This document shows positions 6,241 through 55,984 of a stretch of 64,000 nucleotides of DNA, piece after piece; within the stretch, counting starts at the first letter, position 1; the number at the start of each line of letters is the position of its first letter. Below the pieces are notes generated by a model that made no database searches, was not told where the DNA came from, and saw only the letters and a program-made list of their open reading frames with translations. The position numbers and the translations under genes were made by a program. This DNA comes from Mobula birostris. Its lineage: Eukaryota. The stretch is from the NCBI RefSeq assembly GCF_030028105.1, contig NC_092376.1, positions 170,157,613 to 170,221,612 of the forward strand, written 5' to 3'.

Positions 6241-6543
6241 TGAAATCCCCTCCTCTCAAACTACTGATGTCTGGATTGGTCGCTGGTCATAGTTCTATGC
6301 ATTCAGCAAAATGCACTTCAGCTGCCCATGAGCACAAATCTTTGCAAGTGTGAAAAAATGCAGAGATTTGTAGTCATCAGATGCAGGCTTGATGATACAT
6401 TAATATCTGACTTATTTCCTTATGTTTGAAGGTCATTCAGTTCAACCCAAACTCCAGTTTAATATTATTTCTCTGTGTAGAAAGGATAAAATTGCCATTC
6501 TTTGTTTTTGGAATCATGTTCCCCATTTCTTCAGGTACCTTAC

Positions 6544-6651
6544 CTGTAACCTTGCGCCTTCTTAGACACAGCACCATCACCAGGATAATGATGAGGAGAA
6601 GGGCCAGTCCAGCAGTAATTACAACAGTGGTGTGTCTAAAACTAGAAACCT
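6544..6651 (-). CDS. Transmembrane exon ([20 protein letters not shown] followed by LRRRK)
   Basis: ttttggcag|AG GTT to ACA G|gtaagg, 108 nt. Uncharged hydrophobic helix of about 21 aa, juxtamembrane Cys, basic stop-transfer cluster. Confidence 0.88.
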
Positions 6652-9600
6652 CTGCCAAAACAATAAGCACAAATTTCTAAGTTATTATGTTGGCATTATT
6701 CAAAAGCCATCTAAATGACTGAGAAATAACATTGACTAATTTAGATCACAGGTTCCAGGTTTAATTTCTATTCAAGGCTAACTGACCTGAATGTTGAAGA
6801 ACTACACCTGTCCTCAGTAACCACCAGTGAGAGGCAAGAAATGAATCACAGTGGGATTTAGGTCCCGATATCAATCCAGTTGTCGTGGTCCAGTCCGTGA
6901 ATTCTGCACTCCGGTTCACGGTCCGGTCCGTGGACTCAGGACTCCAGGTCTTCCAGCTGTCCCTTGTTTTGGTTGACTTAATCATAGGCACCTGATTCCC
7001 ATCTTGTGGCTTGGAATATAAGTAGACATGGGGTTGAGTGTGGGCTGCTTGTTTGTCTTGTCAAGATCCTCTGGGATCAACCTGCCGGTGGAAGTCTAGA
7101 GCAGCCACTTGCCATCTTTACGCCGCGTTGGAAAACCATCGCTTCATAGCCTTGCTGTCGGTAGTTGGAGCTGTCTTTGCGGTATGGATTCGGCTGTTTC
7201 CCGGGCCAGCTGAGTGGCCGTCAGCCACTCCGAGCTAGGTAGGGATCTGGCTGTTTCCGTAGCCAGCCGAGATTGCTGGCCGTAACTGCTACTTGGAGCC
7301 TCAAGACCCCAGCCTGTCTCCAAGCTCAAGCCTCAATACCCCAGCCACATCCTGTCCTTGCCTGGTTCTGGGGCCCGAGCCTGAGGCAAGACCCAGGTTC
7401 TGGGTTTGTGTCCAGTCTCTGGCTCGGAGCCCAAGCCCAGGCTCCTAGTACATAGTTCATTGTCCGGGTTCCCTGTCTTGTCCATGTCCTAGCCCAAGTC
7501 TGTATTCCTGTCCCTGCTCCTTGTCTGTATCCTGTCACGTCCCTACTCTAGTCAAGTCCTGTTCCTTGTACTTCAGTGTCTGTGTCTTGCATTTGGGTCC
7601 TTTTCCAACACCCCCAGTGTGACACAGGCATCTCTTTCTGGCAGGAGAACCTGTGGAAATGTGCCACTCATAAAGATTCAGTTCATGGGTGAGGCTTCCC
7701 AATGTTCAACAGAAGAATGCCCATCATAGTCTGGGTTTCTACTGGAATAGGAATTGCCACAGTGTAGTGGTTGTTGCCCCAGAACTTCTATCCCCTTAAA
7801 TGGGAGCTGTAAATGTGAGATACACTCAGCAGGTTAGGCAGCTTCTGTGGAAAGAGAACTGGGAAAATTAATGTTTCAGGTTGAAAATCCTCCATCAGAT
7901 TTCAAGGAATGGTCTTTGGAAAAACGCCTGTCAGATTCCAAGGAAGGGGCTGTGGGGGAAAAAAACCCTGTCAGGTTCCAAGGAAAGGTCTTTGAATAAA
8001 CCTCTATCTGATTCCAAGGAAGGGGCTTTGAATAAACCTCCATCACATTTGAAGGAGGGGTATTTCCACAGATACTCTCAGACCTGCTTAGTGGTTCCAA
8101 TATTTTGGTCTTTCCTTTAGACTTCCTGCATCTAGAAGTTCTGATTTTCAAATACTAAAACTCTGCTGTGCATTTAACTACCGTCTACTGATGTCCATGC
8201 AGCTGAAATTCACTAAACCATTGCAGTGCTGATGAAAATATATTTTTCTATTCTCTGCACACACCCATCACTGTGACTGACATCAAGTCTCCTGTCTTTA
8301 AAGAACATCTTAGCACATGTAGTTGAGTAATTAGCATGGGATTTTCAATGTCTATTATTGTAGTTGTTACTTTCGGGGGTTATTGCTTCATCTGGAAACC
8401 AGGACTGTCTGATCCTGAATTCCCACCTGCCCCAGTGTGTATTTTGTTGGGGCAGGTAGGAATTCAAGATGCCACTCCCTCTTTGCTATGTTGCTGAGGA
8501 TCATGGTCTGATGAAACTCTGACCAAGTTCCTTGTGTATTTTGAGATATTTCGGTTCTTCAAGATGCTGTATCGTTTGCTTGTTCTTGGTAGTTTTGCTG
8601 GTTAATAAATCTTCTGTAACAAAGCAATAACAATGTGGCCTACAGGGAAGAAGTAATCTCCCTGACACAGTGGTGTCAAGGAAACAACCTCTCCCTCAAT
8701 TTCGCAAAAACAAAGGAGCTGGTTGTGGATTACAGGAGGAATGGAGACAGCCTAACCCCTATTGACATCAGTGGATGTGGGGTTGAGAGTGTAAACAGCT
8801 TCAAGTTCCTCGGCGTCCACATCACCGTGGACCTCACGTGGTCTGTACATACCGGTGTGTGCTGAAAAAGGCACAACAGCACCTCTTTCACCTCAGACAG
8901 TTGAAGAAGTTTGGAATGGGCACCCATATCCTAAGAACTTTCTACAGGGGCACAACTGAGAGTATCCTGACTGGCTGCATCACTGTCTGGTATGAGAACT
9001 ATACCTCTCTTAATCGCAGGACTCTGCAGAGAGTGGAGTGGACAGCCTAGCGCATCTGTGGTTGTGAACTTGCCATGATTCAGAATATTTACAAGGATAG
9101 ACGTGTAAAAAGGTCCCGTAGGATTATTGGGGACCCAAGCCATCCCAACCACAATCCATTCCAACTGCTACCATCCGGGAAGCGGTACCGCAGCATAAAA
9201 GCCAGGACCAACAGGCTCCGGGACAGCTTCTTCCACCAGGCTATCAGACTGATAAACTCACGCTGGTTTGAGTGTACATTGACTCTTCTATTTATTATAA
9301 ATTATTATAAATTACTATCATTGCACATTTAGATGAAGATGTAACGTAAAGAATTTTATTCCTCATGTTTGTCAAGGATGTAAGAAATAGTCAATTCAAT
9401 TCAATTGTTTTGTTTGAATTACTGAAGTCTCTGGGATTCCTGCATTTGAGTTCACCAGTGACCCATATTTGGATGTATTTGTCACAAATAAAGCTAATCT
9501 TTGAGGAGGATTTTGCTGAGGTTGCCTTGGCGTTATCTTTTGAAAGGATGGTCCTCTCCAACAACAAAACAAAGATCCTCCATTACCTACTTCACTGTAT

Positions 9601-12600
9601 AAAACTGTCCACTAATGATAAAGGTTCACAGTGATACCCTAAGAAACACGGATCACTTGTCATATCTCAGAGGTCACCTCTCAGAAAGGACAGACATTGG
9701 TGACGAAATTCATGATTGCTTTCTCTGTACCAGGACAGCTTTGCTCAATAGTCAACCATCCAACAGTGATCCCATCTAGAACCTGGTCTACCTAACATGG
9801 GACTAACATTATAAGCATGTGATAGGCCCTGAGAAAAAACAGAAATATCTATAATTTGAAAGAAAGAGATCTCAGAGATTCAAAGCTAAGTCACTTACTG
9901 TTCACCTGAAGATAATATGGAATAAAAATCTTGGGTCTGTTTTGATGAAACACAGCACACATCCATTTTCCTTGGACTTTATCGTCTGTTGGAATAATCA
10001 GCTGCAAAGAGTCACCTTCATTCTTCCGTTCCATGAATATTTTCTCATCCACAATTTCACCATCGCTGTTGATCCAAACCAGTCTCATTGATTCACTGAC
10101 CTCAGACACAGAGCAGGTCAGGGTAACGGTGTCTCCCTCAGTCACTGCATCAGGTGGTTCAACTGTGACTGTGGAAACAACGAATCACTGAGATTTTAAA
10201 CAACGGCCAAAGTTTTGAATCAACTGTGTTGCTTTTCTCTGCTGACTGAAAAGCTAATCCAAGTGATCATTGGCACTATGTGTAAAATGCTACTGCATAA
10301 ATTGAGCTTCCGTAGTCTTTTACAACAGTTTTGAACACAATGTACAACCTCTGAACACAATGGCCCTGGCCATTGCATACCCCCTCTACTAAGATGAATG
10401 ATGTGGATAGTGTGGAGGGCTGTCAGCAGTTACAGAGGGACATTGATAGGATGCAAAACTGGGCTGAGAAGTGACAGATGGAGTTCAACCCAGATAAGTA
10501 TGAGGTGGTTCATTTTGGTAGGTTAAATATGATGGCAGATTATAGTATTAATAGCAAGACTCTTGGCAGTGTGGAGGATCAGAAGGATCTTGGGGTTCGG
10601 GTCCATAGGATACTCAAAGCTGCTACGCAGGTTGACTCTATGGTTAAGAAGGCATATGGTGCACTGGCCTTCATCGATCATGGGATTGAGTTTAAGAGCT
10701 GAGAGGTAATGTTACTGCTATATTGGACCCTGTCAGACCCCACTTGGAGTACTGTGCTCAATTCTGGTCGCCTCACTACAGGAAGGATGTGGAAACCATA
10801 GAAAGGGTGCAGAGGAGATTTACAAAGATGTTGCCTGGATTGGGGAGCGTTGCTTATGAGAATAGATTGAGTGAACTCGACCTTTTCTCTTTGGAGCAAC
10901 AGAGGATGAGAGATGACCTAATAGCGGTGTACAAGAGAATGAGAGACATTGATCATCTGGATAGTCAGAGGCTTTTTCCAGGGCTGAGATGGCTAACATG
11001 AGAGAGCATAGTTTTAAGGTGCTTGGAGGTAGGTACAGAGGAGATGTCAGGGGTAAGTTTTTTTTTATGCAGAGAGTGGTGAGTGCATGGAATGGGCTGC
11101 CAGCGGCAGTGGTGGAGGCGAAAATGATAGGGTCTTCTAAGAGACTCCTGGATGAATACATGGAGCTTAGAAAAATAGATGGCTATGGGTAAGCCTAGGT
11201 AGTTCTAAGGTAAGGACATGTTTGACACAACCTTGTGGGCCGAAGGGCCTGTATTGTGCTGTAGGTTTTCTATGTTTCTATGAATCTTCATTGTGAAAAT
11301 GCTAAGTCATATGGCTGCATCAGCATCTGGTATTGGGGTGGGAACATTGAAGCCTCGAACGCTACCTCTCTTTTTGCATTACTCATTTAAATTTTTTTGT
11401 ACTCTGGGCATGACCTTAGAGGATGTGAATGAATTTTTATAAAAGTAATGAAGAAATATTGATTTTTGCTGCTGTCTCATTTGTAGCGATGGGAAACAAC
11501 TTTAATCACACCGTCTCTCAAAAATAAAGAAAAAGATGTTTAACAGCAAAACAAGTGAACAGAATATTTCAAAGTCGTTGCCAATTATGCTAGTTTAAGG
11601 CAGTTTTAGTGTTCAACAAAATGCAAATAAGTTTTATCGGATGTTTTGAGTAAAAAGGAACATTTTAAACTCGGAAGTAAATGTGGAAACATGCTGAAGT
11701 TGCAGTATGTACACAAACGGCAAACTTCCTCCCAGTGACTTATCTTTGAAAGCATTCTGTCTCTTACCTCTAACTGTGATTAATTCAATGGTCACGTATT
11801 GATATGATCTCAGAGAACATGTGTAAACTCCGGCATCTTCAAACTGCACAGGAACAATCCTCAATCTGAAATTCGTGTCATTCAGACTTTCCCCTGTAGT
11901 TCTCAGTCGGTTCTCGAAGTAGCTCCTCCCACTGACATTGATAGGCTGAGACCTGTAGGCAGTAGCTATTTCCATCTCCCGGTTCTGGAAATGTGACTTC
12001 CAAGTCCATCTGGTTTCATAAAGCTCAGAACAAGTTTCACAAATCAGCTTGAGTTCACTGTGATCTATGTCTGACCGATAAACAGTGTACTTATTGTGTA
12101 AATCTGCAAGACAGGGACGGGTAACAAAGAACTAGGTTATCACAGATGCAGAGATATGGATGTTTCAGGTTTCTACTGGGATAAATACCCGCTCCTAGAA
12201 TGGCTGAGACAGGAAAGTGGATGTGGAGCTGGAATGCACCAGGTGCCAACTGAGATTCCGATCTTCCCCAAACACAGAGTCAGCAAAGAGACACTGTTGA
12301 ACTGGAGATAATAAATGAGCTGAGGGAGTCTCAACACAGCTAACAGCTGAACTGTGTTATACCTGTATCTATACTTTTAATTAGTTTGCAGTTCTTTGTT
12401 TCATTACAGACTAGAAGACTATTTGCTGACATCCATGGATGGGTTTTATTCACTTTGACTCCTACAGGGGAATTGAAATGATTGATGGGTGGCTCCATCA
12501 ATCACAGTGTCACCACTTTACACATAATGGCCACTTTATCCAGTAACTCCTGTAAATAATAAAGAGGCCACTGAGTGTATGTTCATGGTCTTCTGCTGCT

Positions 12601-21600: not shown

Positions 21601-24600
21601 CTGCTCTTCGGTTTTACATCCTATCAGCAGGTTTCCATCTCCTAAAATTCTCACATGGTTCACTTCCCCTACTTGCCCTCTGATGATTTTTGTTAGCTTA
21701 AGTGGATCAATTTTCTTTACTCCCCCTTCCCCCTCAAATCTTACTACTACATTTAGCAATTTTGTCCTCGGGCCCTTCTCTTCAACTTCTCTTCCCTCAC
21801 TTTCCGATCCACCTACACTAGACCCACCTCCTTTCTTTCTATTCCAACCCTTCACCTTCCTGTTCTTAGTCCCTCTCCCAACCTCTTCCCACTCTCCGTG
21901 CTATTGCTGTCATCATCATTCTCCCTCCCTGCCATCCTATCAGAGTTTTCAAGGAACCATGTACGACTATTGTTCTGGACCTATACAGGCCGTCAGTCAA
22001 TATTCCCACAGAATGTCCCCCACAACACCCCAGCAGTTTGTTTGGTTGTCCCTCGGACCAGAACCAATTCCTGCTCAGCACTCATCAGCCGACCGCCAAG
22101 TCCCCTCCCAGCCACTGAAGCTGAACCCAGGAACTGTTTATGTAGCCAGCCAAAATGAGAATCATGTGCCACAATTAAGGCACACAACAGCAGAAGGGAA
22201 AACCAGAAAGCCTGGAATAAGGATCGATGGACCGGACCGTGAACCGGAATGCGGATTTCACGGACCGGACCATGACAATATTATGCCTAAACAAAGGAGA
22301 CTACAATGGGATGAGGGAAGAATTCGATAGGTTAGTTCTGGGAACCAGGCTATGTTGTGAGATGGCTGAGGAACAGTGGAAGACTATCAAAGAGATTTTT
22401 CACAGTGCTCAACAAACGTATATTCCAGTTAAAAGCAAGTGAAATAAGAGTGGGAAGAGCCAGCCATGGATAACTAAAGTAATAAAGAAAGGCATCAAAC
22501 TTAAAGCTCATGTGCACAAAGTTGCCAAGTATAGTAGGTAACTGGAATATTGGGAAAACTTTAAAAAGCAACAAAGAATCACTAAGTGAGCAATAAAGAA
22601 AGGAAAGATAGATTATGTAAATAAGCTAGCAGAAAATATAAAAACAGATATTAAAATTTTTATAATTATATAAAGTGGAAAAGGGTGGCCAAAATGAATG
22701 TAGGTCCCTTGGTGGACAAGAAGAGGAAATTGATATTGGGTAATGAGGAAATGGCCAAGTCTTTGAATAACTATTTTGTGTCAGTTTTCATGGTGGAGGA
22801 GAAGTCTACCATGCCAAAGAGAGATTATATCAATGTGATGGGAGGTGAGGACCCTGATACAATAACAATCACTAAGGAGGTAGTGCTGAGCAAACTTGAG
22901 GACCCAAAGATAGACAAGTCCCCTGGTCCTGATGGGATGTATCCCAGGGTACTGAAAAAAATGGCAGAGGTTATAGTTGAGGTCTTGGTGATAACTTACC
23001 AAAATTCTCTGGACTCTGGGCAGGTCCCTGCAGACACCACTGTTCAATAAAGGATGTAGGCAAAATGCAGGTAACTACAGGGCCAGTTAGATTAACATTT
23101 GTAGTTGGGAAAATACCTGAAGCTATCATTAAAGAAGAAATAGCAAGGCATCTGGAAAGAAATGAATCCATCAAGCAGACGCAGCATGGATTCAGCAAAG
23201 GCAGGCCCTGTTTGACAAACTTACTGGAGTTCTTTGAGGATATAACAAGCACAGCGGATAGAGGGGAACAGATGGAGGTTATTTACTTAGGTTTCCAGAA
23301 GGCGTTTGATAAGGTGCCATATAAGAGACTTATCCATAAGATAAGGATGCATAGAGTTGGGGGTGATGTAATAGCATGGATAGAGAATTGGTTAACCAAT
23401 AGGAAGCAGAGTGTTGCAATACATGTGTGTTTCTCTGGAATCTGTGGTGAGCGGTGTGCCACAGGGGTCGGTACTGGGCCAGCAACTGTTCATGATATAG
23501 GTTAACGATCTGGAAGAGGGGACCGAGTGTAGTGTAGTGTTTGCTAATGACACTAAATTGAGTGGAAAAGCAAATTGTGCAGAGGATACGAAGAGTCTGC
23601 AGAGAGATATAAAGATAGATTAATTGAGTGGGAAAGGATCTGGAAAATGGAGTACAAAATTGGGAAATGCAAGGTCATCCACTTTGGAAAGGAAAATGGA
23701 AGAGCAGATTATTATTTAAATGGTAAAAGATTGCAACATGCTGCTGTGAAGAAGGACTTGGGAGTGCGTGTGCGTGAATCACAAAAGGTTGGTTTGCAAG
23801 TGCAGCAGGCTATCAAGAAAGCAAATGGAATGTTGGCCTTCATTGCTAGAGGGATTGAATTTAAGAGCAGAGAGGTTATGCTACAACTGTGTTGGATACT
23901 GGTGAGGCCGCATCTGGAGTACCGCTTATGGTTCGGGTCTCCTTACTTGAGGAATGGTACAGTGGCTGGGGAGGCAGTGTAGAGGAGGTTCAGCAGGTTG
24001 ATTCCAGAAATAACAGGGTTAGACTATGAGGAGAGATTGAATTGCCTGGGACTGTATTTGCTGGAATTCAGAAGTATGAGATGATATCTTATGGAAACAA
24101 AAAATTATGAAAGGGATAGGAAAGTTGTTTCCACTGGTAGGTGGGACTAGAAGAAAGGGACATAGCCTCAAGATTCACAGGAGTAAATTTAGGATGGAGA
24201 TGAGGAGGAACTGTTTTTCCCAAAGCATAGTGAATCTGTGGAATTCTCTGCCCACTGAAGCAGTGGAAGCTACCTCAGTAAATATATTTAAGACAAGATT
24301 GGATACATTTTTGCATAGTAGGGGAATTAAGAGTGATGAGGAAAAGACAGATGGGTGGAGATGAGTCCATGTTCTGATCAGCCGTGAATGGCAGAACACG
24401 CTCAATGGATCAGATGGCCTACTTCTGCTCCTATTTCTTATGTTCTTATGTAATATGTGGAACAGTTTATAATCAACAACTATTTCATACCTAATGTCAG
24501 TTAACTTTGGACTTACGGTCATCCACTCCAACATTGGTGTCTCCAGTGAGAACAATGGAGCCATTTTCCTGCACCTCCCACGTGTACAGACTAGGATCTC

Positions 24601-27600
24601 CTGTTCCAACATGTCGGACCATCAGATAGACGGTATTATTCAGGTGGATCTGATCAGTGTTGTTGCTCCTCTGGGATGAGCCTGTTGGTTTCCAGTGAAG
24701 ACTGACAGTATCTGGGAGCCTGGAGATGGTACAGCTCAGGGTGACGTCACTGCCCATTACAGGGCTCTGTGAGTCGGCCTCAACTGTGGAAACAGATACA
24801 TGATGTGTGGTTCACTTCCCCACAGACTCTCTGAACTGCTCCAGGCAGGATTGTCATTTCCCTGCAGACAGATAGTTAACCAAACACTGACCAACTGTGC
24901 TCAGTTTATCTGAGGGAATTTTGTTCCAGTAACTTAATATCAATTTAGTGTTTTGGAGTTTGATGATCTACATATATCTTAGCATATGAATAAAAAATTA
25001 TGCCTCAAATCTTAGAGCAGTTTGTAAATTCTTCATATTTTCATCAGTTCAGTAATTTCCCATTAATCCATAGCGGAAGGCTTAAAACAGATCACCAGGT
25101 GGGAGAACTGGGAATTAGTGACCATAAGACCATAAGACAAAGGAGCAGAAGTAGGCCATTCAGCCCATCAAGTCTGCTCCACCATTTTATCATGAGCTGA
25201 TACATTTTCTCCAATTTAGTCCCACTCCCCTGCCTTCTCACCATAACCTTTGATGCCCTGGTTACTCAGATACCTATCAATCTCTGCCTTAAATACACCC
25301 AATGACTTGGCCTCCACTGCTGCCCATGGCAACAAATTCCATAGATTCACCACCCTCTGACTAAAAAAATTTCTTCGCATCTCTGTTCTGAAAGGGCGCC
25401 CTTCAATCCTTAAGTCATGCCCTCTCGTACTAGACACCCCATCAAGGGAAACAACTTTGCCACATCCACTCTCTCCATGCCTTTTAACATTCGAAATGTT
25501 TCTATGAGGTCTCCCCTCATTCTTCTAAACTCCAAGGAATACAGTCCAAGAGCGGACAAACGTTCCTCATATGTTAACCCTCTCATTCCCGGAATTGTTC
25601 TAGTGAATCTTCTCTGTACCCTCCCCAACGTCAGAACATCCTTTCTTAAATAAGGAGACCAAAACTGCCCACAGTACTCCAAGTGAGGTCTCACCAGCAC
25701 CTTATAGAGCCTCAACGTCACATCCCTGCTCCTATACTATATTCCTCTAGAAATGAATGCCAACATTGCATTCGCCTTCTTCACTACTGACTCAACCTGG
25801 AGGTTAACTTTAAGGGTATCCTGTACGAGGACTCCCAAGTCCCATTGCATCTCAGAACTTTGAATTCTTTCCCCATTTAAATAATAGTCTGCCTGTTTAT
25901 TTTTTCTGCCAAAGTGCATAACCATACACTTTCCAACATTGTACTTCAGTTGCCACCTCTCTGCCCATTCTTCCAATGTATCCAAGTCTCTCTGCAGACT
26001 CTCCGTTTCCTCAGCACTACCGGCCCCATTCATCCCGACAGCAGATTCAAACTTCCACATAAAGTTGTTCATGTGTGAAAATCTCAACATTTTCTTCAAT
26101 GCCAATATGGGTAATTTTGCTGAGCATGAGCACCTCTGCTGCCATTCCAATTTCAAAATCAGAGATTTTGTCACAGATGAGCTGTAGTTTAGATATTCAG
26201 ACCAGAGCCATTTTCCACAGCTCTCACCACAAGTTCAATCCCATCACCTCCAACTCTGCAGCAATGTGTATACAAAACTGACCAAATAAATGACTCAAAT
26301 ATTGTTACCCACCAATTTTAATACATAATTCATGTTATGCTGCATTCTGGGTAAGAGGATCACTGTTCAAAGTTAATTTATTAACGAAGAATGCATCTGT
26401 CACCAATACTAACTTGAGATTTGTTTTCTTGCAGGCATGTACAGGAAATATACAGACACAATCCCAACATTATGTGATAAATCTGAAGAAATAGTCACAG
26501 GAAAATTATGTTTTTGAACCCATTCTATTCATTAACCAACATACCTTTGATCCCAAGTATTTCACACTGTCTCAGGATTTTCCCACCGGACTGTGTCTGA
26601 TTCCAGGTGAACAGTCCTGCAAGTTGAAAGGTGGGCTCCCTGATTCTCAGATTAAGGGTACCCCGGTCCACATGTAACCTCTCCGAAATGTCTGGTATTT
26701 TACTGAACTCATCACTCCATTGTACGGCCCACCGCTGATCTTCTCTGTGAAAAGTGGCCAATCGCTTTGTGGTTTGTTGCCCTGTGTGTGGCCTCCATTC
26801 CAAATCAATGGAGTCACTTCCAGGATTGTCTGGCCCCTTCAATACAAAGTCCCCTTCCTGATGGAGAAAGTAAATAGAATTCCCGCTTCCTGCAAATGGG
26901 AAGGAAAATGTAATCAGACAACAGCTTCTCAATGTGATCTGTGTCATGAGGAACAGATGGAAAATTAATTTTGAGGAAGTTGTGAGTTCTGATTCCATTC
27001 ACAGTTTCTGATTAAAATTGTTTGGGATTTCTCACACATCCGTTCGGCCCCTGGCACGACGAGTGCTGGCAATATCGGAAACCAAGTGCAGAGAAAAGAA
27101 AGAACATGTAGAGATGCAGTTGAGAGTTCATTCATAAAAATTCCAAGACATTGTGGCTCAGCCAAGCGGCACTGCGAGAAGTAATGTTCTCAAACTAGGA
27201 CCCGGTAATCAGAGCGAATTGGGCATTTGCTTCAAGTGTACATGGAACACCGAATTTCTGAGCCTATCAAAATAAACTTAATAAGCTTAAACAGAAGGCA
27301 CCAGGAGACCACAATGCAAAGCTGTGAGAAAAGAAAACACACAAGCAACTCTAAATGATTGACGACTCTCACTGAAGAAAAATAAACCAGTTCAGGTGCT
27401 CTGAAACTTCAGAACCCAATACTCTTTGGTCTACCCCCAGCAGAGCTGAAGGTCTCATTACAGCTCCTGAAATTAATATGAACCTTTCTGAATCACAAAG
27501 TGTTTTTAACAAGAATAATGTTTCATAACAATCAATTAAATAAGGTAATTAAAAAATCAAATGACTAAGAAAATTGATTAGTGCAGCAATGAAAAGTGAG

Positions 27601-36600: not shown

Positions 36601-39600
36601 AGCAACCTGGAGCCAATTGGCAATGCCATATATGGTGGCAAAGTCTAACTGACTGGCTTTATGTCATATAGATGGGACAGACTAGCCCCACCTGCACAAC
36701 TGTGGAGAATTGTCCACAGGAGATAGAGTCACACTCCCAGGTTGGTCCCCTGCTGAAGCTGCCAGAGTGTTGGAATGTTTCGGAATGGCACCAATTATAT
36801 TAAAATTAAATAAATAGATATTTTCATTTAATACATATTTAATATATAATATCATTTGAAAATACTTATAAATGAACAAATTCAGCTAAACACAAACTCA
36901 CAGAATCAAGTAATTTCCTTTCTTCCACTCTTTCCTCCTCACCCTGTAAATTCCCCAGTGAAATGAGTGACCTCGCACCAGGACCACCAGCAGTTTTTCC
37001 CACTGTCAATGCCGGGGAATATCAGTGTATTCCTACAAAACCCTGGTTGTACGTGTAGAGTGCAGCAATTGAGAGTGCCAGCAGATTCACCTCCTGTAAA
37101 TGCCAGCAAGCTGGGAATTTCACCTTAGGAAACACAGGACTGGAAGTCCTTTACTTGCTCACATTTCACGTAGGGAAATTCCAGCTGTTCTCTATTTTTG
37201 GTCTCCGCATGGCAATTTTGATTCAAGAATGCAAACAAGTTTAAGATGCAACTGAATTAATACATATATCCCTTTGTGAAGTTGCCCTTATGGAATGAAC
37301 TCTCTGACAAAGTCCAAGTTCCACAGAAAATTGGCTTCCTCATTGATCTTGACCAAGTGAGCCATTGACATGGTCCACTGGGTAACACTGATCAGTAGTT
37401 TCAAAGTCCAGTCTCACCCCAGACCCACTGTGCTGAGATTTATTAGAAGTCATCGACATGTTTCACAACACAATTCAGTCCCTATTACACCATGTCAGTG
37501 AACAGACCATAATACTCACTGTGGGGTAGATTCCATGGCTTCCTGTTCTTGCAGAAAATTGACAAACCATTTTTATGTCAGAGGCAATGAAAAAGTACTT
37601 TTCTCTAAGTTGTTTTAGTGGGAGAAGTACTCTAATTATTTGCATGGAAACATGTTATTGATCTTTGTCTGGCCCACTCACCTTTAATCCCAAAGTTTTC
37701 ATATTATTTCTGAATTCGTTTCCTTGGCTGTGTTTGACTCAGAGTGGACAATACTGCAAGTTCAAAGGTGTATTTACTAATTTTCAAATTAATGGTTCCA
37801 GAATCCAGATCCATCTGCTGGTACGTGTGTCTCGTTCTCCAGTGAGACACCCTGTTCCACCAGGCCTTGTCTGTTCATTGGAAAGGCCTCAGTTTCCAGA
37901 TGTCCAGCCATGAGTCTGGTTTCCATTCCCAGACAACAGGCCCTTCCCAGTCTCTTTCCCCTCACCAGCCTCTGTGAGCTGCACATTACCCACACCTTCC
38001 TCCCTTGTTTCCCATCTCCTCCCCCTTATTCCATGCTCCACAGTCCTCTCGTATCAGCTTCCTCCTGCTTCAGCTCTTTGCCTCTTCCACTTAACACAGC
38101 CCAGCTTCTCACGTCATTCCTTCCCTTTCACACATACCCACTCTCCTCCCATGGATTCACTTATAGACCAGGGAGCCTTACGTCTGTGGTGGGAAAGCTG
38201 TTGGAAAGGATTCTTAGAGATAGGATCTATGGGCATTTAGAGAATCATGGTCTGATCAGGGACAGTCAGCATGGCTTTGTGAAGGGCAGATCGTGTCTAA
38301 CAAGCCTGATAGAGTTCTTTGAGGAGGTGACCAGGCATATGGATGAGGGTAGTGCGGTGGATATGATCTACATGGATTTTAGTAAGGCATTTGATAAGGA
38401 TCCACATGGTACGCTTATTCAGAAAGTCAGAAGGCATGGGATCCAGGGAAGTTTGGCCAGGTGGATTCAGAATTGGCTTGCCTGCAGAAAGCAGAGTGTC
38501 GTGGTGGAGGGAGTACATTCGAATTGGAGGGTTGTGACTAGTGGTGTCCCACAAAGATTGGTTCTGGGACCTCTACTTTTCGTGATTTTTATTAACGACC
38601 TGGATGTGGGGATGGAGGAGAGGGTTGGCAAGTTTGCAGACGACACAAAGGTTGGTGGTGTTGTGGATAGTGTAGAGGATTGTTGCAGATTGCAGAGAGA
38701 CATTGATAAGATGCAGAAGTGAGATGAGAAGTGGCAGGTGGATTTCAACCCGGAGAAGTGTGAGGTGGTACACTTTGGAAGGACAAACTCCAAGGCAGAG
38801 TACAAAGTAAATGGCAGGATACTTTGAAGTGTGGAGGAGCAGAGGGATCTGGGGTTACATGAACACAGATCCCTGAAAGTTGTCTCACAGGTAGATAGGG
38901 TAGTTAAGAAAGCTTATGGAGTGTCAGCTTTCTTAAGAGGAGGAATAGAGTTTAAGAGTCATGGGGTAATGATGCAGCTCTGTAAAACTCTGGTTAGGCC
39001 ACACTTGGAGTACTGTGTCCAGTTCTGTTCCCCTCACTATAGGAAGGATGTGGAAGGGTACAGAGGAGATTTACCAGGATGCTGCCTGGTTTAGAGAGTA
39101 TGCATTATGATCAGAGATTAAGGGAGCTAGGGTTTTACTCTCTGGAGAGGAGGAGGATGAGAGGAGACATGATAGCAGTATACAAGATATTAAGAGGAAT
39201 AGATAGAGTGGACAGCCAGCGCCTCTTCCCCAGGGCACCACTGCTCAATACAAGAGGACATGGCTTTAAGGTAAGGGGTGGGAAGTTAAGGGGTGGGAAG
39301 TTCAAGGGGGATATTAGTGGAAGGTTTTTCACTCAGAGAGTGGCTGGTGCATGGAATGCACTACCTGAGTCAGTGGTGGAGGCAGATACACTAGTGAAGT
39401 TTAAGAGACTACTAGACAGGAAAATGGAGGAAATTGAGGTGGGGGGTTATATGGGAGGCAGGGTTTAAGGGTCGACACAACATTGTGGGCCGAAGGGCCT
39501 GTACTGTGCTGTACCATTCTATGTTCTACCAGCTGTCACTCCTCCCTCTACCCCAGTCTTTTATTCTTCTGCCCTTTTCCTTTCCTGTTCTCATGAAGGG

Positions 39601-42600
39601 TCTTAGAACGAAACATAGACAGTTCATTTCAAATTATAGATGCTAGCTGACCTGTTGAGTTTCTCCAGCATTTTATTTTTGTTGCTTCTTTTCCTTGCTG
39701 TATCTGGTAAAATGATCAAACGATATTTGCTCCTGACAAAAATTTCACAAGCAGGTATCAAGAATCTTCCCCCTATTTGTTTTAATGGGAGATTCACTCT
39801 TCACTGGGTGAAAGAAATCTCATGATTCTCACAATCTCTCATCATTTTACATGAAATTATTTGAAGATAATCAGAAATTCTTGTCTTCCCCACTTACCTT
39901 TGATTCCAAATATTTCATATTGCTTCACGTTTTTCTGTGCTTGAGTTAAAGTGAATAATCCTGCAAATTTAAAGTTGGGTCCATTAATTATCAGATTACC
40001 AGTACGATAATCCAATCTCATTTCCTGGCACAAGTTAATCGATCTCCAGTCATCGTTCCAATTTCCAGTCCACCGTCTTGAGATTCTGGTGAAAGTTCCC
40101 ATTTGGTAGGTGTGCTGCTCTGAGTGTGGTTTCCATTCCAAGACAAAAGGGCCATTTCCAGGATTGTTTGGTCTTTCAAGTATAATATCATCATAATTTT
40201 TTTCCAAGAAATAAACCTGATCTCTGTTTTCTGTGTAGAGAGAAACAACAACAACTGAATGAATATTTAAGACATATTTCCTTTACCCCAAGTAGGTCAT
40301 TAATGTTGAACTTCTTTTTTTCCCCATTCTTTTTGATCTTCTACAGAACCTTCAGTGAGACAGATGCAGCTTGTGAAGATCTGTCTGTCTAGAATAACCC
40401 AGCTGAATCCAGAGATATTTCATGACAGGAGAGGAGTGAGTGGAAGACAGACTGAGGTGGAAGATGGTTGTGCTGGATCTCCATCTGCTCTACCCTGTGA
40501 CAGGGTTTCTTGAGATGCGTGGGGATCAGGTGGATCCTATACACACCACACTGCACTGCTAGCCCTTGTCAGGAAAGACCCGAGACAGAATCAACTCGCT
40601 CCTTTATCCAGAATTGAACTAAAATGGCTTTATTTCTTACATCCTTCACTGACATGTGGAGTAAAAATCTTTATGTTATGTGTCTGTCTGAATGCACAAT
40701 GTGCAATTTATAGTAATTTATAATAAATAATATGTACAACAGGGAAGTCAATATAACATAGAAATTCAGTTGTGTCAGCATGAATTAATCAGTCTGATGG
40801 CCTGGTGGAAGGAGCTGTTCTGGAGCCTGTTGGTCCCGGCTTTTATGCTGCGGTACTGTTTCCTGGATGGCAGCAGCTGGAACAGTTTGTGGTTGGGGTG
40901 ACTAGGTCCGCAATGATCCTTTGGGCCCTTTTTATGCACCTGTCTCCTTAAACGTCCTGTATAGTGGGAAGTTCACATCTACAGATGCAGTGTGCTGTCA
41001 GCTCCACTCTCTGCAGAGTCCTGCAATTGAGGGAAGTACAGTTCCCGTACCAGGTAGCGATGCAGCCAGTCAAGATGCTCTCAATTGTGCCCCTGTAGAG
41101 AGTACTTAGGATCTGGGACTCATGCCGAACCTCTTCAACTGTCTGAGGTGAACGAGGAGCTGTTGTGCTTTTTTCACCACACAGCCAGTATATACAGACC
41201 ACATGAGATCCTTGGTGATGTGTATGCTGAGGAACTGAAAGCTGCTCACTTAATCAATCCCAGATCCATTGCTATCAATAGGAGTTAGCCAGTCTCCATT
41301 CCTCCATTCCTCCCGTAGTCCACAAGCAGCTCCTTTGTTTTTGTGACACTGAGGAAGAGAATGTTTTCTTAACATCACTGTGTCAGGGTGATGACTTCTC
41401 TGTAGGCTGCCTTTTTATTATTTTAGATAAGGCCAATCAATGTAGTATCATCAGCAAATATAATTAGCAGATTGGAGCTGTGGGTGGTGACACAGTGATG
41501 AATATACAGAGCATAAAGGAGGGGGCTTAGGACACAGCTCTGAGGGGCACCTGTGTTGAGGGTCAGAGGGGTGGATGTGAGGGAGCCCACTCTTACCACC
41601 TGCCAGGGATCTGAGAGGAAGTCCAGGATCCAGCTGCACAAGGCAGGGTGAAGGCCGAGGTCTCTGAGCTTCTTGTCGTCTGGAGGGAAGTATAGTGTGG
41701 AATGCAGAACTGTCATCTAAGAACAGCATTCTCACGTAAGCATCCTTTTCCTCCAGATGTGTAAGGACGGTGTGTAGAGCTGTGGCTTTTGTGTTATCTG
41801 TTGATCAGTTGGGTCAGTTGGTGAATTGTAGGGGTTCTAGTGTGGGTGATAGTCCTTGACCAGCCTCTCAAAGCACTTGCTTATTCTTGACGAGAGTACT
41901 ACAGGACTCCAGTCGTTCAGACATGTTACCCTGGTCTTTTTAGGTACAGGAACAATGGTGGATGTTTTGAAGCAGTAGGGCACTCTACACTGGGAGAGGG
42001 AGAGATTAAAAACGTCTATAAACACACCTGACAGCTGTGCTATGCACACTCTGAGTACCCGCCCTGGGATGTTGTCCAGTCCCACAGCCTTGTGACTGTC
42101 CGCTCATCCTGCGTACTTCAGTCTCAGAGATGACCAAGGTGCAGGCTGCTTCAATGGCTCTCCCCAGGGACGCAATGGTGGCAACATTGAACTGAGTGTA
42201 AAAAAGATTTAGCTCATCTGCGAGAGAGGCAGCGATGTTGGAAACTCCACTGCGTTTAGCTTTGAAGTCTGCTATGGCATGCAGACCTTGCCATAAGCTG
42301 CGTGTGTTGGTGGAGAGCTGTGTCTGGATCTTGTTCCTGTAGTGTTATTTTGCTGCCTTGATGACTTTGGGTAGATCATAGTTGCATTTCTTGAGTTCCT
42401 GTTGGTTCCTGACGGCGTAAGCTCTGTCTCGCGTGGTAAGTGCAGCACGCACAAAACTGTTGATCCAGGGTTTCTGGTTTGGATAGACCCCGACCGATTT
42501 TTGGGGGACAACATCCTCAATACACTTCCAGATGAAGCTCACAAGTCATCCTCATCCGGATAAAACTTGGAGTCAACCTCATCACGAAAGACATTCCAGT

Positions 42601-51600: not shown

Positions 51601-53791
51601 GGCAGTTCCTCACGGACTGGGAAGGATTTGGACCCAAGGAACAATGCTGGGTTCCAGAAAGGGATATCTCAGATTTAGCTCTTATCCATGACTACCATCA
51701 ACATCTCTCTGAGCAGTCAGCGCTGGCAAGAGTTGGCTGTAAGGGAGGGGTTCCTGTTACGATACGCACAAAAACGTGCTAGCTTCCGCAGTTTAAACAC
51801 TCTGACTCTCTGGATTGTGGATAGCTGGCACGGCCCTTTTAAAAATGCAGGACCACCCTACTAATTGGCAGTTATGATTTGGTGCCAGGATTTTAATATT
51901 TAAAGAGCACCTGAACTGATCAATCATCAGATCTATGTTGGATTCTCATCCAGTGTCTGGTTTAGAACCCTGTTCCCATTTCAGTCTCGTATCGAGTCTT
52001 GGATACTCTAGCACATGCGTCCTGACCATCCTTGCCCAGGTCTCTAATCATACAGAGACCACAGGGTCACTGGATGCTGAAAGCATTTGCACCTGCTTGT
52101 CTATCTGCAATTTGTCATATTTTCAAGGTGCATTGGCACATTATTACACAAATGTTATTAACAAAGCACTCTAACATGATAGAGGTTCCATTTTCTAACA
52201 GACCAAAATGTCATTTTGATACTACAAATAAAGCACATTTCTACATGCTTCAGACAAAAGTTTCCTCCTTTTTCATTGAGTGGTGCTACCTCTGTTCTAG
52301 TTACTCTGTTGTTTTTAATGTTTGTGCAAAATTCCTTGTAATCATCTTTATTCCCATCTACCAAGGGCATTTCATGGAGAATTTTGGCTTTTTGACTAAA
52401 TTTGAAATATCTCTTTAACCTAATGTTTATTAACCCCGCTAATCTCAACTTTTTTTCTCTCTCACGAACCCTGATCATTTCACCTTTAACCATTTCTCAC
52501 GTGTCTGATGTGGACTTACACAATAACTGTTGCTCTCAAGTAACTTTCCCCAGCTCCTGCATAATACTGTTCTAATTACCGTTTCACTGATTTAGCAATT
52601 TGCCCCGAGTTCCAGTCTTCCCAATATAGATAGCAATTTGAATATTTGTAGATTTGTGATTGCTGTTCCCAAAATGCTCCCCCAACTTTCCAACTCACCC
52701 CCCTCCAACACAAACCTCACATGGCAAGGCTCATTTCCAAATATAATGTCCAGTCTGGCCTCTTTTACAATATTCATATACTATGTCAAAAACTGTGTCG
52801 GATGCACATGACTAATATGGTGTGATCTAAACGTCAGCATTACATTGTTCTGGTCAACATTAAGGTGATTAGTAATACCAACTCAAGGACCTGTTACAAT
52901 TACACTTTTCATAATCTCCTCATGTTCTTTTCCTGTATCTTCCACTGTCTTTGTGGATGGAAGCCCATCTCCTGGTAAATAAGGCATTATGTTTGCTTTT
53001 GTGTTCTTAGCCTCAGACAGTTGCCAGGAGGTATCATCATTCTGCTAGGAAACAGTGTTGGGTGATTTGTGTGTGTGTAATATTTGCTCTTCCTGTATTG
53101 GGCACTCTACATGCAATCTGCAAGTTTGGAGATTGTGGAGGGTTTTAGAGAGGGGTTGGCAAGCTCGAGGAGGTGTTGACAGTTGACTATTGGAAGCAAG
53201 AATCAGTTTTCGGTTGGCGTCATCAAAGAGTGCTATAAAATGAGAATTAGGAGGATCCCAGGATAGGTTGTCAGAGGGAGCCAGGGGAAACTGTACGGGA
53301 GGTGAAGTGAAGAAATTACGGGTGAGTCTCAAGCTACAAATAGATCAGCAAGGTGAGAGCAGTTCCACTTGGCTGGACTGTGGTGGGGAGTTGTTGGAGG
53401 AGATATTGTGGACAACTTATCAAAGTCTGCAGACAGACTGGGCAGGATAAAGAGGGAGAGTTTCCCTCTGCAACGTGCTCACTGGATGTTATTTCTGACT
53501 GTGATAGGAACTGTGTTAGTGCAGAAGGGAAGAGTCCTGGTGGGAGGAGCACAGAGATGAAACTCTGTTAATAATGTGATGGTTTGTGAGACAGCAGCAC
53601 ATTCAGGGACTCAGAGAGCAATGTGAGTTTGAAAATGGGCAGCAAGTTTACATGGACAATAATAAAACAATGTGGTTGTGATTGGTGAAGAAAAATCACT
53701 TACTTTGAGTGGAAACAGGATGAAGAAGTAGAACAAAGAAATTAAACATCAAACCAGCTGGCAAACTTCTGCAGTGAAACCTCAGCCTCAT
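6544..53791 (-). CDS. Spliced gene model: type I membrane protein with leader, 8 Ig domains (V-C2-V-C2-V-C2-V-C2) and TM; CD4/LAG-3/G6F-like-related IgSF receptor; cytoplasmic tail unresolved
   Basis: Ten GT-AG exons joined in phase 1: 53704-53791, 39898-40230, 31831-32100, 30928-31269, 30589-30849, 26545-26889, 24517-24783, 11768-12103, 9899-10168, 6544-6651. Total 2620 nt with no stop. Junction codons are AAA, GTT, CAT, GTC, GGA, GTT, CAT, GTC, AAG. Confidence 0.8.
6881..7624 (+). mobile_element. Solo LTR
   Basis: TGTCGTGG...GTGACA termini, flanks cagt/cagg (imperfect 4-bp TSD), tataag at ~7017. Both ends match the inverted copy at 14404-22277. Confidence 0.7.
7888..8065. repeat. ~36-bp minisatellite, about 5 diverged copies
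   Basis: Unit approximates cctctatcagattccaaggaaggggctttgaataaa. Confidence 0.75.
8635..9405 (+). mobile_element. Rex/Babar-type LINE, 3' fragment
   Basis: [65 protein letters not shown]; (caatt)n tail. Confidence 0.8.
9899..10168 (-). CDS. Ig exon D8 (C2-like, paralog of D4)
   Basis: tttccacag|TC ACA to AAC A|gtaagt, 270 nt open. [11 protein letters not shown]...LVWI...GKWMC. Confidence 0.9.
10392..11283 (+). mobile_element. CR1 3' fragment in the D7-D8 intron
   Basis: [14 protein letters not shown] and [18 protein letters not shown]; tttctatgtttctatg tail. Confidence 0.9.
11768..12103 (-). CDS. Ig exon D7 (V-like, paralog of D3)
   Basis: tcttgcag|AT TTA to AGA G|gtaaga, 336 nt open. LICETC...WTW...[18 protein letters not shown]...IELITVR. 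Confidence 0.9.
12521..13050. mobile_element. Non-autonomous Tc1/mariner-type element (MITE)
   Basis: Imperfect inverted termini cacataatggccactttat and ataaagtggaccctaagtg, each flanked by TA; no coding capacity. Confidence 0.55.
14885..15062. repeat. 36-bp tandem repeat, about 5 copies, inside the LTR
   Basis: Unit tggtcttgggagacaggaacacagaacacagagccc; translates as [12 protein letters not shown] repeats. Confidence 0.85.
15170..15330. repeat. 25-bp tandem repeat, about 6 copies, inside the LTR
   Basis: Unit caggcgaggcatcaggcgaaggtag. Confidence 0.85.
15372..22107 (-). mobile_element. Near full-length Nimb/I-group LINE (gag-like ORF1; ORF2 APE-RT-RNase H), degenerate
   Basis: ORF1 zinc knuckles [33 protein letters not shown] motif CISETWL, RT motifs PQGSVVS and LFADDGALW, RNase H motif [10 protein letters not shown]. 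(gaa)n tail. 15-bp TSD ccagccactgaagct at 15357-15371 and 22108-22122. Confidence 0.88.
18815..20436 (+). mobile_element. Young 5'-truncated CR1 inserted in the Nimb endonuclease
   Basis: Nearly intact RT ([17 protein letters not shown]), (ttctatgg)n tail, 7-bp TSD atggatt at 18808-18814 and 20437-20443. Confidence 0.92.
24517..24783 (-). CDS. Ig exon D6 (C2-like, paralog of D2; F-strand Cys replaced by Trp)
   Basis: tttccacag|TT GAG to GAC C|gtaagt, 267 nt open. GSDVTLSC...LHWK...LYTWEV. Confidence 0.88.
25115..26030 (-). mobile_element. CR1 3' fragment
   Basis: [14 protein letters not shown] and [16 protein letters not shown]; (tcttatgg)n tail. Confidence 0.9.
26545..26889 (-). CDS. Ig exon D5 (V-like, paralog of D1, lacks canonical Cys pair)
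   Basis: catttgcag|GA AGC to AAA G|gtatgt, 345 nt open. [20 protein letters not shown]. Confidence 0.85.
28490..28790 (-). mobile_element. CR1 3' end fragment
   Basis: [12 protein letters not shown]...[16 protein letters not shown]. Confidence 0.8.
29430..29715 (+). mobile_element. CR1 3' end fragment
   Basis: Same sequence family as 10990-11283, with a tttctatgtttctatg tail. Confidence 0.8.
30589..30849 (-). CDS. Ig exon D4 (C2-like)
   Basis: tttccacag|TC ACA to AGT G|gtgagt, 261 nt open. [11 protein letters not shown]...LVWI...GKWMC. Confidence 0.9.
30928..31269 (-). CDS. Ig exon D3 (V-like)
   Basis: gatacag|AT TTA to AAA G|gttgga (weak donor), 342 nt open. LVCYSC...WNW...[18 protein letters not shown]...IELITVK. 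Confidence 0.9.
31831..32100 (-). CDS. Ig exon D2 (C2-like)
   Basis: tctcacag|TT GAG to ACA C|gtaagt, 270 nt open. GSDVTLSC...LHWK...DGKLYQC. Confidence 0.9.
32690..33055 (+). mobile_element. CR1 3' fragment
   Basis: [22 protein letters not shown]. Confidence 0.8.
33057..35810 (-). mobile_element. CR1 ORF2 fragment, interrupted at ~34950-35215 by another LINE 3' end
   Basis: [32 protein letters not shown]; (tcttatgg)n tail at ~33057-33075. Confidence 0.85.
35815..36040 (+). mobile_element. CR1 3' UTR fragment
   Basis: gtgtgaaatgagctgcca...gaagggcctgtttctctgctgta...ctctatgactcta. Confidence 0.7.
37014..37182. promoter_or_regulatory. Cluster of NF-kB-like motifs in the D1-D2 intron
   Basis: GGGAAATTCC at 37173-37182 (full match to GGGRNWYYCC), GGGAATTTCA at 37113-37122, GGGAATATCA at 37015-37024. 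Motif match only. Confidence 0.3.
37905..39700 (+). mobile_element. Penelope-like fragment split by a CR1 insertion
   Basis: Pyrimidine-rich sequence at 37905-38160 resumes at ~39527. Degenerate hammerhead-like CTCATGAAGGGTCTTAGAACGAAAC at ~39590. Confidence 0.55.
38161..39526 (+). mobile_element. 5'-truncated CR1, same subfamily as 44270-48488 and 57968-60758
   Basis: [35 protein letters not shown] is nearly identical among the three copies; ttctatgttc tail. Confidence 0.92.
39898..40230 (-). CDS. Ig exon D1 (V-like, lacks canonical Cys pair)
   Basis: ctctacacag|AA AAC AGA to ATC AAA G|gtaagt, 333 nt open. Contains LEWKP (C-strand Trp), FAGLFTLTQ and YEIFGIK. Confidence 0.85.
40615..42770 (-). 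mobile_element. Rex/Babar-type LINE, internally deleted
   Basis: [67 protein letters not shown]. Confidence 0.85.
44270..48488 (+). mobile_element. Near full-length CR1 LINE with stops and frameshifts
   Basis: ORF1 coiled coil and esterase ([20 protein letters not shown]). ORF2 APE (YLNAR, ITETWL, MGDFNFP) and RT. (ttctatg)n tail. Confidence 0.92.
49297..49817 (+). mobile_element. Short non-coding retroelement inserted in Gypsy pol
   Basis: 5-bp TSD aagtt at 49292-49296 and 49818-49822; removing it restores NFYRKFIRTFS. Starts TTCCGGTCAAGATGGC and ends with a ttgaact-like tail. Confidence 0.7.
53704..53791 (-). CDS. Signal-peptide exon [29 protein letters not shown]
   Basis: ATG at 53791 in GCAAAATG context, basic N-region then hydrophobic core, donor A|gtaagt in phase 1. 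An acceptor-like ctcttacag|G at 53803 suggests an upstream non-coding exon. Its link to D1 across a 13.5 kb intron is inferred. Confidence 0.7.
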
Positions 53792-55794: not shown

Positions 55795-55984
55795 NNNNNN
55801 NNNNNNNNNNNNNNNNNNNNNNNNNNNNNNNNNNNNNNNNNNNNNNNNNNNNNNNNNNNNNNNNNNNNNNNNNNNNNNNNNNNNNNNNNNNNNNNNNNNN
55901 NNNNNNNNNNNNNNNNNNNNNNNNNNNNNNNNNNNNNNNNNNNNNNNNNNNNNNNNNNNNNNNNNNNNNNNNNNNNNNNNNNNN
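55795..55984. other. Assembly gap (190 N)
   Basis: Run of N. Confidence 1.

Follow-up and report, generated by a model that had tools for sequence, protein, structure and literature searches.

An expressed eight-immunoglobulin-domain gene of Mobula birostris with two predicted CD4/LAG-3-like units and a putative paired-receptor family in cartilaginous fishes

Introduction

A stretch of the Mobula birostris genome carries eight immunoglobulin (Ig) exons that repeat one series of four domains, raising the question of whether they encode a single receptor or two adjacent ones, and of the family to which such a receptor would belong. The stretch, referred to here as the window, comprises 64,000 nucleotides (nt) of RefSeq assembly GCF_030028105.1 (contig NC_092376.1, positions 170,157,613 to 170,221,612 of the forward strand); window positions are used throughout, and the domains are designated D1 to D8 from the leader towards the membrane. 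An earlier note, made from the letters of this DNA, had proposed a receptor of doubled length related to CD4 and LAG-3, with two units each composed of V-type and C2-type Ig domains in the order V-C2-V-C2. Here we combine public RNA data, splice-site and frame analysis, structure prediction, profile searches and phylogeny to address both questions. The RNA data establish a single expressed gene. We estimate a probability of about 0.72 that its product is a type I membrane receptor formed by two CD4/LAG-3-like V-C2-V-C2 units, with a variable head on a stalk and an inhibitory tail bearing ITIMs (immunoreceptor tyrosine-based inhibitory motifs), and that it belongs to a paired receptor family.

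RNA evidence for a single gene

RNA contigs from four public runs were placed on two regions of the window, 26400-32200 and 6400-12200. The joint between D4 and D5 (30588/26888) is present in all four runs, at depths of 30-134 and with 42-59 nt on the shorter side; it skips 3699 bases with GT..AG on the coding strand and connects the D4 donor exactly to the D5 acceptor. The D3-D4 joint, across an intron of 78 nt, and the D7-D8 joint likewise recur in four of four runs, the D2-D3 joint in three and the joint of D8 to the transmembrane (TM) exon in two, and the D5-D6 joint is represented in the contigs by an exact loose end of 19 nt. RNA depth falls on exons and repeats, leaving the unique intron sequence uncovered. 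Contigs of 300 nt match D3 with zero differences in three runs and, since several contigs of 150-300 nt agree with D3, D7 and D8 at every base, the runs carry exactly the gene of the window. Across the two regions and four runs, no joint is listed from D4 to the membrane exon or to anything but D5. Because the RNA contigs of all four runs carry the D4-D5 splice, D1 to D8 constitute one gene and not two. The single gene put forward in the earlier note, which had singled out this junction for examination, is thereby borne out, as it is by orthologs and paralogs with the same order of domain types (ABCDABCD, described below).

Some features of the RNA data concern the exons and introns individually. 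Within the D4 exon (30650-30784), all four runs contain two to three contig variants with 3-5 differences per 100 nt from the window, which may be alleles or near-identical paralogous D4 exons, perhaps through gene conversion. In three runs a second joint is seen at 6643-6651/9899, with different letters (GTAATCCT on the + strand) in place of the initial 8 bases of the TM exon; it is likely the transcript of a close paralog or allele. Four intron segments (8534-9309, 10280-11443, 28534-28921 and 29310-29891) reach RNA word depths of thousands to tens of thousands, and represent transcripts of interspersed repeat copies and no exons of the eight-Ig gene.

Gene structure

Frames were read codon by codon by script to obtain exon ends, splice sites and phases. 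Nine exons on the minus strand are each bounded by an AG acceptor and a GT donor, are in phase 1 on either side and have lengths divisible by 3; the leader exon and the pseudo-exon described below lie on that strand too. The coding part of the leader exon (53704-53791) extends from an ATG at 53791 over 29 codons plus one base to a phase-1 donor (GTAAGT); its 29 residues include a hydrophobic core and are identical to residues 1-29 of XP_072120184.1, an "uncharacterized protein" of 987 residues from Mobula birostris (label P0039). The leader-D1 joint is based on canonical splice sites and on this RefSeq model, the RNA read coverage being restricted to the two regions named above.

The membrane-distal tip is formed by D1 (39898-40230), a V-like domain without the canonical cysteine pair, recognized through its splice sites, its frame and a modelled Ig sandwich. 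It is followed by D2 (31831-32100), a C2-type domain with LYQC on its F strand and no WxC (frame, Pfam and the D2-D3 RNA joint); by D3 (30928-31269), a V-type Ig domain with VYTC (frame, Pfam and RNA contigs); and by D4 (30589-30849), a C2-type domain with an F-strand WxC (GKWMC), whose donor joins D5 (frame, Pfam and RNA joint). After a short Gly/Ser linker, the membrane-proximal unit begins with D5 (26545-26889), the paralog of D1 (frame, alignment and RNA), and continues with D6 (24517-24783), the paralog of D2, in which Trp takes the place of the F-strand Cys (LYTW; frame, alignment and RNA loose end). The unit is completed by D7 (11768-12103), a V-type paralog of D3 (frame, Pfam and the D7-D8 RNA joint), and D8 (9899-10168), a C2-type paralog of D4 with GKWMC (frame, Pfam and the D8-TM RNA joint). 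The TM exon (6544-6651), assigned from its frame, encodes an uncharged span and then an RRRK stop-transfer sequence; it has a phase-1 donor of its own (GTAAGG), and the gene therefore runs on beyond the window start. A tblastn search found no match to the 114-residue tail of XP_072120184.1 anywhere in the window. Apart from the eight-Ig gene, the window contains repeats only.

Pairwise global alignment yields identities of 41% for D1/D5, 68% for D2/D6, 54% for D3/D7 and 52% for D4/D8, against 17-35% for all other domain combinations, in agreement with the four paralog pairs in the same order that the earlier note had described. Pfam reports generic or C-type Ig matches in D2, D4, D6 and D8 and weak V-set matches in D3 and D7, and no match in a scan of D1 and D5. 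The frame spliced from the window comprises 873 residues and is 100% identical to XP_072120184.1 over 843 of them, so that RefSeq already models the locus as a single eight-Ig protein. Other statements of the earlier note also stand: the eight phase-1 Ig exons with leader and TM exon, the stop-free frame of at least 873 residues, the V-to-C2 junction strings (IELITVK/VTAEP and EIFGIK/VETSS), GKWMC in D4 and D8, and introns filled with decayed transposable elements, in which we find retroelement remains (RVT_1, endonuclease and integrase matches). Its use of the stop-free frame as evidence of selection holds in part: the argument is weak across phase-1 exons, and conservation across species is the better one. 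A false duplication introduced by the assembly, which the note had considered unlikely, is ruled out, as the units diverge by 32-59% and other species possess orthologous units.

The intron between D1 and D2 holds a decayed D1-like pseudo-exon (37653-37946), detected by tblastn with family proteins (E-values of 1e-14 to 4e-10), which contains two in-frame stops and is not part of the mRNA; it probably remains from a duplication that was partial or from an exchange of exons with a paralog. At 55795-55984, roughly 2 kb upstream of the ATG, there is a run of 190 N.

Relation to CD4 and LAG-3

CD4 and LAG-3 are marked by the V-C2-V-C2 order with a strand common to V and C2, by WxC in both D2 and D4, and by the tail motifs Cx(C/H) in CD4 and (F/Y)xxL(D/E) in LAG-3 (Takizawa et al. 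2023, PMC10768021). We modelled residues 31-431 (D1-D4) with AlphaFold (AF2), using an alignment of 75 family units, and obtained a mean predicted local distance difference test (pLDDT) of 89 and a predicted template modelling score (pTM) of 0.84, with four Ig sandwiches per unit. Taken together with Pfam, the models indicate a V-C2-V-C2 unit present twice in tandem. Continuous strands predicted at 99-113 and 303-318 bridge both V-C2 junctions of the D1-D4 model, and in a model of all eight domains (pLDDT 73) further strands at 506-519 and 706-721 extend this pattern to all four junctions, while the Gly/Ser linker between D4 and D5 has a pLDDT below 50.

A Foldseek search of the PDB with the D1-D4 model returns LAG-3 first (8dgg_A, 1.1e-16) and CD4 next (5.2e-16). 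Among Swiss-Prot models, the first 18 ranks all fall to CD4 or LAG-3 (15 of these 18 being CD4), with E-values of 1e-18 to 7e-15 and the whole ectodomain aligned; IgSF8 and Ly-9 follow at 1.5e-14 to 7.5e-14, about four orders of magnitude weaker. The TM-scores of these alignments are low (~0.35), as expected of hinged rods. Sequence profiles give a less clear picture: the unit profile matches LAG-3 (4e-9 to 2e-7) and CD4 (6e-6) in the PDB with the V-C2 junction and WxC aligned, and CD4 and LAG-3 supply 10 of the top 13 PDB matches of the D4-type profile (~3e-5), again with WxC aligned. The W and C of the GKWMC found in D4 and D8 are invariant in 49 family D4/D8 domains. [quoted passage not shown] On predicted structure, the affinity with CD4 and LAG-3 suggested in the earlier note is upheld, and we place the family within the CD4/LAG-3 structural family as a putative third branch that is divergent and orthologous to neither gene.

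Several points weigh against the receptor reading proposed here. Its relation to CD4 and LAG-3 rests mainly on predicted structure. With the unit profile, CEA reaches 3.6e-9, and the E-values of LAG-3 are thus no better; the D1 profile retrieves nothing significant from the PDB, the best match being sodium channel beta-4 (E 0.047). WxC, which the earlier note had cited for the membrane-proximal C2 domain, is present in D4 and D8 and missing from D2 (LYQC) and D6 (LYTW), so that the family hallmark is found in only half of the C2 domains. The ITIMs discussed below are known from the RefSeq model, the tail exons lying outside the window, and shorter isoforms with skipped exons are possible because all Ig exons have phase 1 at both ends.

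Part of this evidence would fit a generic multi-Ig adhesion or ITIM receptor of the CEACAM, Siglec/CD22, SLAM or VCAM/obscurin kind, in which the likeness to CD4 and LAG-3 would be convergent or a property of any V-C2-V-C2 chain. CEA is the single best PDB sequence match, WxC is absent from D2 and D6, and databases name relatives "obscurin-like" and "VCAM1-like"; the ITIM tail with its YxxI/L-type motif resembles those of CEACAM1 and the Siglecs, and D1 is free of a disulfide, like the V domains of CD2/SLAM, and weakly matches disulfide-less V repeats of teleosts. We nevertheless consider this account unlikely. Over four domains, CD4 and LAG-3 precede not only IgSF8 and Ly-9, which has the V-C2-V-C2 order itself, but also pIgR by the margin given above, the predominance of CD4 and LAG-3 among the matches of the D4-type profile comes with WxC aligned, and a G/A strand common to the pair is predicted at each of the four V-C2 junctions.

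Cytoplasmic tail and paired-receptor signature

Canonical ITIMs were defined by the pattern (S/I/V/L)xYxx(I/V/L). The tail of XP_072120184.1 holds two that are conserved across the family, IHYASI and VIYTQI, plus a gene-specific LSYNQV. Most family tails also contain a membrane-proximal YxN (LYSNV, LYANP), the tyrosine of which is replaced in the window gene (NLDAN).

Three types of membrane and tail region can be distinguished among the fetched proteins. The window gene represents the first, with an uncharged span and an ITIM-bearing tail some 120 residues long. Proteins of the second type (P0005, P0037, P0042, P0045 and P0046) have an Arg in the span and an ITIM-free tail 30-49 residues long, and those of the third (P0003, P0008, P0015, P0026, P0027, P0048, P0070 and P0074) a Lys in the span and a short tail. 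P0042, encoded on the same chromosome record as the window gene, has a D1 94% identical to the D1 of the window, yet an Arg-type TM segment and a short tail. Near-identical ectodomains combined either with an ITIM tail or with an Arg/Lys span and a short tail make up a paired inhibitory/activating pattern, and the sequences thus describe a clustered multigene family with the putative signature of paired receptors.

The membrane-proximal YxN of most family tails raises the question of whether the family might be the cartilaginous-fish counterpart of G6F and the teleost G6F-like thrombocyte receptor and not a leukocyte inhibitory receptor. G6F and G6F-like reportedly carry such a YxN, and teleost G6F-like is said to have four Ig domains and similarity to CD4/LAG-3. 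However, the tail has no ITAM (immunoreceptor tyrosine-based activation motif), the window gene has lost the YxN tyrosine, and a large, diversifying cluster of paired receptors stands against a single-copy G6F; we regard this counterpart as very unlikely.

A chondrichthyan family and the age of the doubling

A search with D1 of 1.8 billion representative proteins returned 22 matches; the strong ones all come from cartilaginous fishes, and several of them carry two or three D1-like stretches. Matches of D1 in teleosts (grass carp, Triplophysa) were rejected as family members, being disulfide-less V repeats with per-domain E-values of ~1e-3, and look-alikes in the ESM Atlas belong to generic Ig clusters only. 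A further search, with a manta protein of 974 residues (P0002), led to 62 relatives.

The domains of the fetched proteins were typed with four small hidden Markov models (HMMs), designated A to D. Thirty of these proteins have the order ABCDABCD, in at least 20 species of sharks, rays and skates and one chimaera. They include sharks (Carcharodon, Cetorhinus, Rhincodon, Stegostoma, Ginglymostoma, Chiloscyllium, Hemiscyllium, Heterodontus, Heptranchias and Pristiophorus), batoids (two species of Mobula, Hemitrygon, Hypanus, Pristis, Amblyraja, Leucoraja and Rhinoraja) and the chimaera Callorhinchus. Other architectures are AB, ABD, ABCD and at least 12 domains, and the models from Narcine contain seven of the eight domains (ABCDABC) or are shorter. 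Within this large chondrichthyan family the eight-domain layout is the most frequent one. The 190-Mb M. birostris record of the window gene alone contains six genes of the eight-Ig class and three four-Ig genes. Eight-Ig paralogs and orthologs such as XP_072120630.1 and V9NJF3 are 55-91% identical to XP_072120184.1. The relatives are named "uncharacterized" in databases, save for the automatic names "obscurin-like" (nurse shark V9NJF3) and "VCAM1-like".

A maximum-likelihood (ML) tree of 85 units of four domains each unites every membrane-proximal unit of the elasmobranch eight-Ig proteins in a single clade (support of 100 in the Shimodaira-Hasegawa-like approximate likelihood ratio test, SH-aLRT) that stands apart from the distal units, and the doubling consequently predates the split between sharks and batoids. 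With this evidence, two adjacent four-Ig genes (D1-D4 and D5-D8, the upstream copy lacking a TM exon or dead) become a highly improbable explanation: phase-1 exons would give continuity of frame automatically, four-Ig members occur in the family and a decayed D1-like exon lies close by, but the D4 donor is joined exactly to the D5 acceptor in RNA contigs of four runs, neither a D4-TM joint nor any other D4 joint is listed, D5 has no leader of its own, and the same eight-domain order recurs in the RefSeq model and 30 fetched proteins, with unit 2 orthologous across elasmobranchs.

The F-strand Trp of D6, standing where the Cys would be, recurs in those unit-2 sequences that were inspected and in a consensus built from 26 eight-Ig proteins; it is a long-fixed feature and no sign of decay.

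Other observations bear on the history of the units. In Callorhinchus milii (P0089), the two four-Ig units cluster together, outside the elasmobranch unit-1 and unit-2 clades, a pairing indicative of either a separate doubling or homogenization through concerted evolution. Within the window gene, synonymous divergence (dS) between units is only about 0.5-0.7 for D2/D6, D3/D7 and D4/D8, despite a duplication older than the shark-ray split; the likely causes, singly or together, are a clock that runs slowly in elasmobranchs and gene conversion, either between units or between paralogs. The ratio of nonsynonymous to synonymous divergence (dN/dS) between units is 0.36-0.57, a figure of limited value given the high dS and possible gene conversion. 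Four RefSeq models, from catshark, sevengill shark, stingray and white shark (P0001, P0029, P0032 and P0033), contain 11-15 Ig domains, and P0001 begins with a transposon-like peptide; these may be true receptors of three or four units or read-through fusions of tandem genes.

The eight-domain form is hence ancient, common and already in databases, where it is unnamed and unstudied. The earlier note knew of no described eight-domain member, and we likewise found no published description of the family in the literature, beyond a remark in Redmond et al. (PMC6238376) that Venkatesh et al. 2014 saw "several CD4/LAG3-like molecules"; the supplement of Venkatesh et al. may list such molecules. Novelty does not extend to the layout itself, which is present in RefSeq, is the most frequent one in the family and entered GenBank around 2013 as a nurse shark cDNA (V9NJF3, named "obscurin-like protein").

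Variability of the domains

In a comparison of 26 eight-Ig proteins, variability is highest in D1 (51% mean pairwise identity, 1.42 bits per column), while D5, the paralog of D1, ranks with the least variable domains (72%, 0.72 bits); D3, too, varies more than D7. The most economical reading of this pattern is likely a diversifying head that would bind ligand through D1, helped by D3, carried by a conserved D5-D8 stalk with a flexible linker. Two equivalent binding sites are a less economical solution, and the suggestion of the earlier note that the doubled receptor might bind two ligands is accordingly not favoured by the variability data.

Discussion

The results allow us to outline how the receptor might work. 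In the models, the last strand of each V domain runs on as the first strand of the following C2 domain, and each V-C2 pair would thus behave as a rigid rod, giving four rods and three hinges, with the Gly/Ser linker that joins D4 to D5 as one of the hinges. The outer unit, and D1 above all, varies among paralogs and species and is a likely ligand-binding head; the more conserved inner unit (D5-D8) would then serve as a stalk that sets its reach. In what is presumably an immune-cell setting, the ITIMs of the tail, judged by their motifs, could recruit SHP-type phosphatases and so damp the activation of the leukocyte that carries the receptor.

A bolder extension, which we put forward as rather doubtful, is that the family constitutes a germline paired receptor system of the natural killer (NK) type in cartilaginous fishes, built on the CD4/LAG-3 scaffold that binds class II molecules of the major histocompatibility complex (MHC), with the variable D1 tips of inhibitory and activating members reading MHC or MHC-like ligands and the number of four-Ig units (one, two or more) tuning the reach of the head over the gap between cells. 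If this were true, the repetition of (V-C2)n would act as an evolvable ruler, and the origin of CD4 and LAG-3 would be tied to an older, diversified family of sensors.

CD4 and LAG-3 have been treated as a family of two members, or three with G6F-like, derived from one V-C2 doubling. The locus analyzed here would extend this picture: the scaffold appears to have been doubled again, and shark, ray and chimaera genomes each hold dozens of genes of an expanded family that combines inhibitory and putative activating members with a fast-changing tip domain. To a layout already in databases, our analysis adds the paired-receptor nature, the head-and-stalk pattern of variability and the structural tie to CD4 and LAG-3. 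The family provides a concrete candidate for paired innate receptors, which are poorly known in cartilaginous fish, and a new outgroup for reconstructing the origin of CD4 and LAG-3. Its natural series of 2, 3, 4, 8 and possibly at least 12 domains is also suited to relating ectodomain length to receptor function.

Comparison with known systems

Among known receptors, LAG-3 shares with the manta receptor the V-C2-V-C2 order, the strand across V-C2 pairs (predicted in the manta receptor), WxC in the membrane-proximal C2 domain and, presumably, a functionally inhibitory tail. The manta receptor differs in having eight domains instead of four, in the absence of WxC from D2 and D6 and in a D1 with neither the disulfide nor the long loop of LAG-3; its tail carries canonical ITIMs in place of (F/Y)xxL(D/E) or KIEELE, and it belongs to a multigene paired family, whereas LAG-3 is a single gene. 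With CD4 it has in common the rod-hinge-rod layout of four domains, here a predicted one, the WxC aligned in the D4-type profile and a D1 encoded on a single exon, as in shark CD4 (PMC10768021). It departs from CD4 in its ITIM tail, which lacks the LCK-binding motif Cx(C/H), in its doubled ectodomain and in an identity of ~14%.

Ly-9 (SLAMF3) offers a parallel for a V-C2 module doubled in tandem within one gene and for a first V domain without disulfide; its structural match is weaker (5e-14 vs 1e-18), it has four domains, and its tail bears the immunoreceptor tyrosine-based switch motif (ITSM). Teleost G6F-like reportedly has a CD4/LAG-3-like ectodomain of four Ig domains and a tail YxN, the latter found in most members of the manta family; it is said to carry an ITAM and to mark thrombocytes, in contrast to the ITIMs and the lost YxN tyrosine of the manta gene. 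In their organization, the closest likeness is to the paired Ig families (LILR/PIR, KIR, SIRP, Siglec and the teleost NITR and LITR), which also form clustered multigene families with the most variable domain at the tip and contain inhibitory members with two ITIMs next to counterparts with an Arg or Lys in the span and a short tail. What sets the manta family apart from them is its scaffold, predicted to consist of CD4/LAG-3-like V-C2 rods.

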